Positions 3,441 through 63,856 of a stretch of DNA of 64,000 bases are shown here, one piece after another (position 1 is the stretch's first letter; each line of letters opens with the position of its first letter). This stretch comes from Lama glama. Taxonomy: Eukaryota. The stretch covers positions 46,562,001 through 46,626,000 of the forward strand of contig CM052851.1 in NCBI GenBank assembly GCA_028534125.1. Reading direction: 5' to 3'. The notes beneath the pieces were generated by a model. That model saw only the letters and a list, made by a program, of their open reading frames with translations, was not told the DNA's origin and made no database searches. The position numbers and the translations under genes are program-made.

Positions 3441-4639
3441 CCATGCTAGCCTCTCTCTCTAAGGTGACTCTGTCCCTTGTCTGGTGATGCCATCCTTGTC
3501 TGCATCTGAGTCTATCCACCCCCCAGGCTGGAAGCTCTGAGGACAGTGTCCCCTAAGCTTGAGTCTGAGCCTGTGAATATCGGTTAAATGGACAGATGGA
3601 AGGATGACTGGGGTCCCTGGAATCCCTGGAAGCTCACCACCAACACTTCCCTCTGTCTAAGGGTCTCATTCCTGGCTTCCATGGACTCGCATGGGTAGGT
3701 GGGCAGGGGGATGTGTGCTTGTTCTGGGCTTGACTGGGGGAAGGACCCCTTCTGAGGGCATAGTCCCTGAGAGGGCACAGGAAGTGGGTGAGAATCATTG
3801 TCAGCTGTGTGCTGGGTGGCAGAGCGCTGGGTCCTCGAGGCTGGGATGGGATGGGATAGAAGGAGGCCTGGTCCAGTGGGGCAGCTCAGAGCTCTGTGTG
3901 AGGCATCACCATCTCCTTCCTTGCCACTCCCCCTGCTCCCTCCTGTGGTTTGCTTGTATGTTCTGGAAGCAGTTGGGCCCCCAGGACTCCAGACACTGCT
4001 CACAGCCAAAAATGAGGCCTTAAAGAGAGAACAGAAGACAAAAGGGGAGGAAGACACAGATAAGTAGAGATTGGGAAGAAGGTGGGAGTAGGAGGTCACA
4101 GGGCCTGGGCGTTCCACACCTTCTGGATGGGACGGTGGCCACTGTGGCTCTTGGCCCAGCATGGACCCAAGCCTGTGCCCAGGCCTGTGTGGCTGCCAGG
4201 ACACAGGAGCCCACTGCAGGGTGAGCTCTGAGCCATTAGGGGTGGCTCCCTGTGCTGGGGAACCAGGGATGCCCTTCCCCAGGCCTCAGTGCCTCCTTTT
4301 TGGGGTGGAGATCACCAGTTGGCTGGCCTCAGACCAGAGACAGACTCGTAGGGTGCTCTCTCCCCAGAGGCCCCCCACCTCAAGATTTTTATCTGCCCTC
4401 ACTCCCCAGAGGCAGCCAGTGGGCTAGAAAGATCTTTGGCGCACCTTCTCTTTAGTCTTAAAAATTCACGAAGTTTATTGCATTTTACTCCATAACATCC
4501 CATGTTTCTTTCAATAGAAAACATACTGATTTTCTCTAAAACTGCAGTCAAGGTGAAGTTCCAGGTGCCTGGTTTATGCTGAGGCCTGCAGCTCGTTCCC
4601 AGGTGCCGCCTCTGCAGTCCCGGTGAAGCCGGTCTGGAA

Positions 4640-5345
4640 TCCCCAACGATGCTGGGGTGTCCGGGGCCAGGATGGTAGAGGGATGGGTTGGCGCCCCCTC
4701 CCCGATCCCGCCCGCGGGCGTCACCTAAGCCGCCGTTGCCATGGGCCCGCGGCAGATGGCCGGGTTTAGGGTTCCCTGGCGGGCGGCGCGCACGGGATTA
4801 GGTGAATTAGGGAGGCCGAGCCGTGCCGTTGCCGTAGCCGCCGCCAGGCCCTCCGCGTCATGGAGCCCTCTGCCCACGCCGCCGAATCCGACAACCCCGC
4901 CGACCCCGCCGACCCCGCCGACCCCGCCGAGGCGCGCGCCAAGCAGCCCGGCAAGTGGGCGCTGCTGCGCAGCCTGAACCAGGCACTGAAGACCTACGCG
5001 GTCCTGCCGGTGAGGCCCTGGCTGGGAGGGGGAGCGGGAGGAGGGCCCCGCCCAGGGCCTCCGTCGCCCGGCCTGTTGGGAGCCTTGGGAGCCACAGGGT
5101 TACAAAGCCCCAAGGTGCACGCAGACCCGGGCCCCTCGGGGTTACTCTGGTCCCAAACTCCCAGCATAAACTTGGCCCCCTCACCCCACCTGCCCCTGGG
5201 TGGGGCGGAAAGTTTTGCATCTGGAAAATAGGAGGTGGGCGGGCCAGCGTCTGGGAAAGCAGTGAGTGAGGGGCTCTGTAGAAGTTTGTGCACTGGCTGA
5301 CCTGATAGCAGAAGGACAGGGGCGCGCGGGCCCCTCTACCAGGGA
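4640..5345. promoter_or_regulatory. CpG island / putative internal promoter
   Basis: Dense CpG and GC boxes relative to flanks; CAGATG E-box 4753-4758; GGGATTAG (CTAATCCC) about 4794-4801; GAATTAG about 4804-4810. Confidence 0.75.
4860..5009 (+). CDS. MYO7A: Candidate alternative first coding exon of MYO7A (50-aa N-terminal extension)
   Basis: ATG in context gtcATGg; 150 nt open; ends CCG|gtgagg at phase 0, matching the phase-0 start of exon 3; lies in a CpG island. Confidence 0.7.
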
Positions 5346-8282
5346 AGGTTAGCAACTGGACACTTCCTTGCTCACAGGTGCCCCTGGCAAATCAGTTGGA
5401 CCATCTTTCCCACCTGTGAAAATGGGGCTAATATAACCAGTGTCCCAGAGTGATTATCAGGATAAGTGAGGGGGGAAAACGTCCTGAAACAGACTCCTTT
5501 TCAATCCATAAACAGGGGCTGAGCCCCAGGCCCTGCCCCAGAGGAGGAAAGAGGCATAAAAGGCTAAGGCCCTGTGGGGAGTTAATTCTGCTCTGATACT
5601 GGGCTCATGCCTGGGAGGGAAGGCGGATGGACACCAAGGATGTCTTCCGTTTGTACTCCTCTCTCATCTTCACAAGCACTGAGTCCCTTGCATTTTAAGG
5701 CTGGTGAACCCCAAGGTCCAGAGAGACTGAAAAACTTACCCAAAATCACACAGCATTAGTTGTAGAACTGGGCTGGAACTTGCCCCAGGTTACACAGCCA
5801 TCTTGAGGCAGGTGTCCCATCACAAATGGGAATTTTGATTCCAGATGAGGTCCCTAGTAGGGTGCCCCTCACAGTAGGATGTTAGGAATGGGGCCAGATG
5901 CAGTCATGGGCTGCCTGGCATCTGGCCATGGGGATGGGAAGAGCTGGTAGGGTCAGACCTGGGCCCAGTGTCCCTTTCCTCTCTTCCCTCTTCCTGCCCC
6001 TCGAAAAAGTGTCATGTTCTTTTACATCTTCCTTGCTCCTCTCCTTCCCTCACCCAGCCAGGGACTCTTAACCCTCCCTGTTTTTGGTCCAGGCTCTGCC
6101 TTGCAGATGCTCACAGTCTCATCAGTTACCAATTTGATGGGGGACTGTGGCCAAGTTCCTTTCTCTCTTTGGACCTCAGTTTACTCATCTGTAAAATGAG
6201 GAGTCTTACAACCCAGCTGCATTCTGATGCCCCAAGGACTTTCCTGGGGACCATGGGAACTGTCCCCCTCAGAAGTTCTCAGGCTCTAGACTCCTCCCTG
6301 AAGCTATCACTTTAGCCTCTTTTCTCAGGTTCTGGCTGAGAGCAAAGAAAATTAAGTCACTGCCCTCCTGGTGAGAGTCATCAGCTCCCAGTGTTCTAGT
6401 CACTTCTGTTTGCTGTGCTGCCCTCAGTTGAAGCTTTCAGCTTGCCTTTTGGGCCTGTGAACCGTCCACGGCCAGGGACCCTGTCAGTGCTTCCTGTTCT
6501 GCTCACAGAGCTCGGTTCAGGGCTGGGCCCAGGGGATGTCAGGAGAGAGCACTGGATTTGGAGTTTGAGCTTCGTTCCTGGCTCTACCACAAAACGCCTG
6601 TGTGGCCTTGGGCATGTTTCTTGTGGGAGATGAAGTAGAGATAGAATCCCCTGCCTAAGCAACATGGTCATGAGGTTCAAGGAGATAGTTAATTACAGGG
6701 AAGCACCTACCTGGCCTGCTGCGAGGGTCTCGAGTCAGCAGAGAGCAGCGTCCTGGTACCACTGCGTGCCAGGGCTGGCCCCCAGCAATCAGGCAGTCTC
6801 TCTCACATGCACTCTGTCACATGCTCCCTCTTACACACTCACACACATGCTCACCTACACACTCTCTCACATATATGCTCACACTCTCTTACTGAGAGAA
6901 AAACTGTTTCTCTGTGCTTGTTCTGGGGAATCACAGATGGAAGACTCAGACCAAAACCCACCCACAAAGGGCTGCAGGCACATGAGGGATGGACGCAGAG
7001 GGTGGTGACCCAGCATGGTGCTGGCTGTAAGGGGCAAGTCTGGGTCCCCGAGCCCTGAGAAGTGCCTGCCTTCTCTACACAGCAGCTGGAGTGAAGTTCT
7101 GAAAATGTAAATCCATCATGCCATTCTTCTGTTTAAAACCTTCCCCTGGCTTCTAGTCATACTTCAAAGCAAGTCCTTCTGCCCCTGGCTTGCAGGGCGC
7201 TATGTGACCTGGTGCTGCCCACATCCTCCAAGGCCCTCCCTCATCTCACTCCAATCTGGGCCTGCCCTTAGTAGACACTCTGCTTTCCCATCTCCTCACT
7301 GCTCTAGTCCCAGAGTCTAGAATGAACCCGGCCCATGGTGGGCTCCCCACAAACATGTACTGAAGGAATGAATGAACTCTTCATGAGTTGGGGAGGAGGA
7401 GGAGGAAGGTGGGACAGTGGGGAGGGTCCAGAGAAGAGCTGCTGTTTGCTCTGGGTCTGGACAGATGGGGTGGTGGTCCACTCAGTGGAAAGGTGGGGTG
7501 GGATGGGGGGCAGGTGGAGCTGAACAGCCAGAGCAGGAGTAGGTCAGGTGGTCCATGGGCTGGACTTCGAGAGGGTGAGGAGTGTGGCAGGAAGCACAGC
7601 TTGGACCTGGGACTAAAGCAGTCCTGAGGATTAAATGGAAGCAGCCGTGTAGCCTGGGCACACAGTAGGTGCTCAGCAAACATGTGAGTTCTCCTCCCCT
7701 CCCAAGGTGCTCCAGTTTTTCTTACTTCTGGGAGAAACCTTGAGTTTGAAGCTAGACTGTTTCTGACATTGGCTAACCTCCCATGACATGGAGGCCCACG
7801 ATGGCCACTGTGGCTGAAAATGGGTGGTTCCGAGGGGAACAGGAGGCCGAAACAGTGATGAGTCAGCCTCGGGACTCGCTTCTTTAGGACAGGCGGGAAG
7901 TGGTTTGGGTGCCCCAGTGTTTCTGCCTAAACCTCAGTGGGTTTGAGTGTGTGGCATAGAGCCTTAGGGAGAGCTGGGCTTGGACAGGCCTGCATTTGAA
8001 GCTGCCCAATTGCGTGGTCTCGGCTCTTGATCTCTGGGCCTCCGCTTACTTATTTGTGAACTGGGGACAGTAGTGGCTGCCATAGAGGAGGGACTGATGA
8101 CACTGCATAAGTGCCCAGCCCAGGGCCTGGCACCATGGCTTCCACAAGTGAGCTCCCTTTTCTTCCGTCTTCTGTGGTTGGCGTAAGAGCCTCTGTGGTG
8201 GTGGGACAGGCACCGGACTGCCTGGAAGGGATGCCCGATCCTTGTCCCTGCTCACTGGTCTGGGACTCTCTCTCACCCACAG

Positions 8283-63856
<55,574 letters not shown>

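Follow-up and report, generated by a model that had tools for sequence, protein, structure and literature searches.

The closest described counterpart of the locus reported here is MYO7A-N of the mouse, an isoform of unconventional myosin-VIIa whose transcript was found in the cochlea by long-read sequencing and 5' RACE (PMC13396587). Its first exon (145 bp) combines a 31-nt UTR with 38 codons and is spliced to the exon common to all isoforms, which adds 5 residues to the N-terminal extension (PMC13396587). In the mouse, this isoform is expressed mainly in outer hair cells, where it occurs alongside the canonical one and increases towards the high-frequency base of the cochlea; the protein is located at the upper tip-link density (PMC13396587). 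The mouse extension acts allosterically to cut the kcat of the actin-activated ATPase from 0.38 to 0.05 per s (~ 7-fold), with an unchanged KATPase (apparent actin affinity) and a slightly lower gliding speed, and the lower ATPase has been proposed to favour sustained tip-link tension (PMC13396587). Structural differences between the mouse C and N isoforms include loop 2, and the MYO7A-N extension has been stated to be conserved across vertebrates (PMC13396587). At the regulatory level, the canonical Myo7a promoter has weak activity in outer hair cells, and an intronic enhancer, EnhancerA, preferentially supports Myo7a-N with SIX2 (PMC13079962). In addition, of two zebrafish regulatory blocks driving hair-cell reporters, one is the counterpart of the Myo7a-N first exon and the other falls immediately 5' of it, at the presumed N promoter (PMC13079962). 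The MYO7A-N exon is therefore already known in the mouse (preprint in 2025, Nat Commun in 2026), so that the exon described below is real but not new.

Two further isoforms, MYO7A-C (MVILQQ/K start) and MYO7A-S, are encoded by the same gene and share with MYO7A-N every exon from position 8283 of our sequence onward; what sets the isoforms apart is limited to the promoter, the first exon and how long the N-terminal extension is. MYO7A-C carries an 11-residue extension and has, in the mouse, a kcat ~ 7-fold higher than that of the N isoform, whereas MYO7A-S has no extension and starts at the Met of MDL... inside the common exon. Other myosins (class I myosins, MYO15A isoforms) carry N-terminal extensions that resemble the one of MYO7A-N in that alternative 5' exons alter motor output or localisation, but these have no sequence relationship with it, the likeness being one of mode of working and not of family. 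This comparison with extensions that tune other myosins, already made in an earlier note on this DNA, is the same one drawn by the authors of MYO7A-N (PMC13396587).

Examining a stretch of 64,000 nucleotides (64 kb, hereafter the window), we found that positions 4860–5009 very probably represent the coding portion of an alternative first exon orthologous to that of MYO7A-N, judging from sequence homology. The features of this region are as follows:

4600–5200, strand not assigned: CpG island with the putative internal promoter and the N first exon (GC 0.72, CpG observed/expected 0.72–0.91)
4794–4811, plus strand: putative core-promoter motif GGGATTAGGTGAATTAGG, an 18-nt exact match to mouse, 48 nt upstream of ATG 4860
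4829–4859, plus strand: putative 5' UTR of the N first exon, placed from the 31-nt UTR of mouse Myo7a-N
4860–5009, plus strand: coding part of the very probable MYO7A-N first exon, 50 codons, with residues 1–30 acidic, Pro-rich and variable, and residues 31–50 conserved
4879–4930, plus strand: in-frame 9-nt tandem repeat of ~ 5.8 copies encoding (A-D-P)n (period 9, 86% matches; also period 27)
5010–5015, plus strand: phase-0 splice donor GTGAGG, read as CCG/GTGAGG
5010–8282, plus strand: predicted intron of 3273 nt that follows the N first exon and precedes the common exon, deduced from donor and acceptor
8283–8396, plus strand: common MYO7A exon of 114 nt (38 codons, GDYVWMDL...), with acceptor, donor and a match to 9dfs_D
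12549–12701, plus strand: next MYO7A exon of 51 codons (...DHLIY), located by tblastn with the gray whale gene model P0020, with acceptor CACAG/ and donor /GTGAGT

Read again in the sequence, the ATG at 4860 opens 50 sense codons on the plus strand, through to 5009. The Kozak context of this ATG, CGCGTCATGG, presents a G at both −3 and +4; a TGA lies in frame with it at 4803, and no further ATG was found upstream of it in 4762–4859. The common exon, which is exon 2 in the N isoform and exon 3 in the canonical isoform, is flanked by an acceptor (...CACCCACAG/GGG at 8282/8283) and by a donor GTGAGT at 8397. These readings bear out what the earlier note had put forward for the locus, namely exactly 50 codons from ATG 4860 to a phase-0 donor, a following MYO7A exon that also starts in phase 0 (GDYVW...), and a CpG island around the first of them. 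The translation of 8283–8396 matched residues 4–41 of 9dfv_D and, by tblastn, was 100% identical to residues 66–103 of gray whale P0020. The canonical MVILQQ/K exon is absent from the 64-kb window (pattern search and six-frame regex) and must lie upstream of window base 1. A database fragment (P0044) starts with MVILQQ-GDYVW and matches the exons of the window from GDYVW onward. The MYO7A locus also holds five runs of N in the window, totalling 787 bases (20745–20876, 25232–25443, 25730–25876, 33077–33224 and 43364–43511).

The identity of the exon is carried by its relationship to the mouse isoform. Compared with all PDB chain sequences, the 50-aa peptide had a single real relative, 9dfs_D (unconventional myosin-VIIa, 1077 aa; E 4.6e-10), its residues 15–50 aligning to residues 8–43 of that chain. 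A Pfam search of the same peptide returned nothing meaningful. The translation of 8283–8396 matched residues 44–81 of 9dfs_D (E 1.1e-18). Residues 43 and 44 of this chain are therefore contiguous across both exon matches, and the junction AVLP/GDYVW is identical to that of the solved MYO7A-N construct, as would be produced here by a phase-0 donor and a phase-0 acceptor on the same strand, with the first exon upstream of the common one. In the mouse form (Li et al., PMC13396587; PDB 9dfs), too, an alternative first exon is joined in phase 0 to the common exon; the mouse exon has a start site of its own, as the exon here would have. Of the 20 C-terminal residues of the exon, 16 are identical between the two, and so is the promoter 18-mer. 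They differ in length (38 codons in mouse versus 50 here, the surplus falling within the acidic, Pro-rich repeat) and in the spacing from motif to ATG (40 nt versus 48 nt). The 9dfs_D match and its shared junction, taken with what has been published on the Myo7a-N first exon (PMC13396587), support two suggestions of the earlier note: that this start would replace the canonical short one, and that the exon may be the orthologue of alternative N-terminal Myo7a isoforms reported in mouse hair cells.

Using the 123-aa read-through ORF (4860–5228) as query, we retrieved 26 clusters not labelled human (best E 9e-58), nearly all of them ORFs that continue past the donor, as contigs of DNA would be expected to give, and these 26 constitute the alignment. 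Sequence labelled Homo sapiens was left out of the comparison because of that label (P0027; a 74-aa NCBI entry, 'myosin VIIA, partial [Homo sapiens]', which bears a Myosin_VII_N domain and matched the same query). With the 50-aa peptide as query, exhaustive HMMER searching yielded 8 further clusters of the same layout, including short forms of 35–40 codons like the 38 of mouse, bringing the total to 34 ORF clusters, mostly unlabelled and apparently mammalian. Among the 26 aligned clusters, mean pairwise identity was 0.74 over the first 8 residues, 0.45 in the acidic Pro-rich repeat part, 0.77 over EARAKQP and 0.91 over the last 20 codons (GKWAL...AVLP, residues 31–50); it was 0.81 for the three codons spanning the donor (V-R/S-P, compatible with GTGAG), then 0.23, 0.14 and 0.07 in successive stretches of the intron. 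In 34 of 34 clusters, the start (ME-x-P) was kept, as was the frame as far as the donor, a count to be read with the bias towards intact frames that comes from retrieving related copies as ORFs. No frame-shifted copies were retrieved among the related clusters, though such copies should also have surfaced, since most of the search words fall within the conserved 3' half. Coding constraint was thus visible at the protein level, with start, frame and donor kept and conservation ending at the donor, as well as in 11 codons compared by eye with the mouse knock-in template (codons 31–41), where the 6 differing sites comprise 4 synonymous and 2 conservative changes (V/L, N/S). Frame conservation in relatives, which the earlier note had raised, is hence seen in these clusters, conservation falling right after the donor. 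The special standing that it gave to a length of 50 residues did not survive: coding length ranges from 35 to 53 codons in the 34 clusters and from 39 to 53 in the 26 aligned ones, 50 being the commonest value among related ORFs and the mouse, at 38, being a short one.

Outside the ORF clusters, the gray whale model P0020 contains a KWAL[VIL]R[SN][LV]N-type extension joined to GDYVW, and so do annotated models of rattlesnake, bar-tailed godwit and three teleosts that a search with P0020 as query brought up, and the snake, bird and teleost models agree with the published conservation of the extension across vertebrates (PMC13396587). All hits of mammalian N-type sequence in this search were genome gene models, and no spliced mammalian N-type fragment from an RNA assembly was found among them. 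The non-mammalian models (snake, bird, teleost) are without the acidic, Pro-rich half. Their extension (P0040–P0043, P0045) opens with a basic/aromatic segment, e.g. M-Y/F-K-R-R-D-Y-V-E-L-Y-E-K-D-Q in teleosts, and the teleost model P0045 uses an earlier donor. The gray whale model P0020 takes an upstream ATG as its start, leaves out ME-x-P and continues past the donor that follows ...HLIY; both of its ends look like artefacts of automatic annotation, and the junction from the N exon to GDYVW is still used in it.

Taken alone, the ORF at 4860 is unremarkable by chance, and its significance comes from homology. An ATG-started ORF of at least 50 codons was present in 75% of shuffles of 4762–5400, so that in such GC-rich sequence an ORF of that size is by itself no proof, and 7% of the shuffles combined such an ORF with an in-phase GTRAG donor; several frames on both strands also hold ORFs of 50–165 aa overlapping the 4860–5009 region. 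These figures are what would be expected if a fortuitous ORF in a GC-rich CpG island happened to end at a GT, but this explanation is refuted by the 9dfs_D match with its identical junction, by related ORFs whose E values go down to 9e-58 in a database of 5.8 billion proteins, and by a core conserved out to teleost gene models, and we regard it as practically negligible. A more substantial question is whether the block owes its conservation to its DNA, with a promoter or enhancer function for MYO7A, and is not translated as a first exon in this species. Part of the exon conservation could indeed be regulatory, and the zebrafish blocks that drive hair-cell reporters coincide with the Myo7a-N first exon and the adjoining upstream stretch (PMC13079962). 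Upstream of the exon, GGGATTAGGTGAATTAGG, an 18-mer of the mouse HA-Myo7a-N repair template, occurs once in the window and in 0 of 100 shuffles, and its mouse copy ends 40 nt before the ATG, covering roughly −27 to −10 relative to the 5' RACE start as counted from the 31-nt UTR. Its translation, GLGELG, recurs upstream in at least 9 other clusters (P0011, P0016, P0021, P0024–26, P0032, P0035 and P0038), in a frame relative to the ATG that varies, being in frame in some species and out of frame here and in mouse (mouse by eye). As GLGELG is kept while its frame shifts, the pattern indicates that the motif at 4794–4811 would be constrained as DNA rather than as protein, as expected of a core promoter. 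For the exon itself, however, a purely regulatory role is very improbable: the start codon and frame are kept in all 34 clusters despite many indels, the conservation boundary is the donor and no other, the mouse differences over codons 31–41 are mostly synonymous, and the mouse exon is translated (HA knock-in), its loss leading to degeneration of outer hair cells (PMC13396587).

The last alternative accepts the exon as that of MYO7A-N and adds to it a lineage-specific tuning of the motor through the length of the acidic repeat. The in-frame 9-nt tandem repeat inside the exon would lend itself to such a role, and its length does vary: P0001, the closest relative (94% identical), has exactly 9 codons fewer in the repeat, that is 41 codons against 50, within the range covered by all clusters. 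Moreover, parts of the exon are present in runs labelled as bat metagenome. It is conceivable, at the far end of what we would entertain, that the repeat is a fast-evolving length dial by which motor kinetics or tip-link tension is matched to the frequencies that a lineage hears. Such a dial would be of special interest were the genome that of an echolocating bat, since MYO7A-N predominates in the high-frequency outer hair cells of the mouse. Yet the commonest length among related ORFs is the one found here, the acidic half is poorly conserved (identity 0.45) and absent from the non-mammalian models, its mouse counterpart is disordered in the structure (PMC13396587), and neutral slippage accounts for all these observations, so that we consider tuning by repeat length very unlikely. 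The variation from 35 to 53 codons across clusters suggests slippage of the repeat. The preferred reading remains that of an orthologous MYO7A-N first exon whose acidic half has a variable length.

Several observations complete the description of the promoter region. The CpG island and the exact mouse 18-mer at 4794–4811 fit a separate N promoter, with the canonical promoter outside the window, as is the first exon of MYO7A-C. In some species, an upstream ATG lies in frame and yields a longer ORF; here the upstream stretch is out of frame, with the TGA at 4803. The mouse EnhancerA would be expected in the intron that follows exon 12549–12701, and no match to its two flanking guide sequences was found in the window at ≤ 3 mismatches, a result that is uninformative at such evolutionary distance. 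In the run index, 0.78–0.83 of 18 sampled exon words were present in 4 runs of unlabelled kind, and only 0.11–0.17 in 4 metagenomic or metatranscriptomic RNA-Seq runs (bat, lung and liver samples).

The earlier note had also seen an amphipathic-looking helix in the second half of the peptide, which our analysis does not uphold. The hydrophobic moment of the 18-mer K32–L49 was not above that of shuffles (p 0.23), although the 11-mer LLRSLNQALKT reached 0.75, and in the mouse cryo-EM structure the N-terminal extension as far as Val36 (V48 in the present peptide) is not resolved (PMC13396587). A single-sequence AlphaFold2 model of whale P0020 (mean pLDDT 47, extension < 50) was too poor for the helix question.

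Under the proposed working of the N isoform, the internal CpG-island promoter, with its motif at 4794–4811, would start transcription some tens of nucleotides ahead of ATG 4860, and splicing would then link the donor of the resulting first exon (5010) with the acceptor of the common exon (8283). The motor domain would then carry a 55-residue extension (50 + GDYVW) in place of the canonical 11 (MVILQQ + GDYVW). The position of the start site, the expression in outer hair cells, the localisation, the kinetics and the control by EnhancerA and SIX2 are those that we infer for this species from the mouse (PMC13396587, PMC13079962), and would hold here by analogy.

These results concern an Usher 1B and deafness gene, whose N isoform predominates in the high-frequency outer hair cells of the mouse, with relevance to isoform-aware gene therapy and to models of tip-link tension. 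A real and recently described exon was recognised from raw sequence alone, and the value of the finding lies in annotation: exon, donor and promoter motif can be annotated with confidence. Beyond known biology, it contributes two points only, both of them small additions to knowledge. The first is that the acidic half is built on an in-frame 9-nt tandem repeat whose length, varying probably by slippage, differs even from that of the closest relative. The second is the KWAL...LLP core, common to snake, bird, teleost and mammal gene models, which is thus kept from teleosts to mammals in public gene models.
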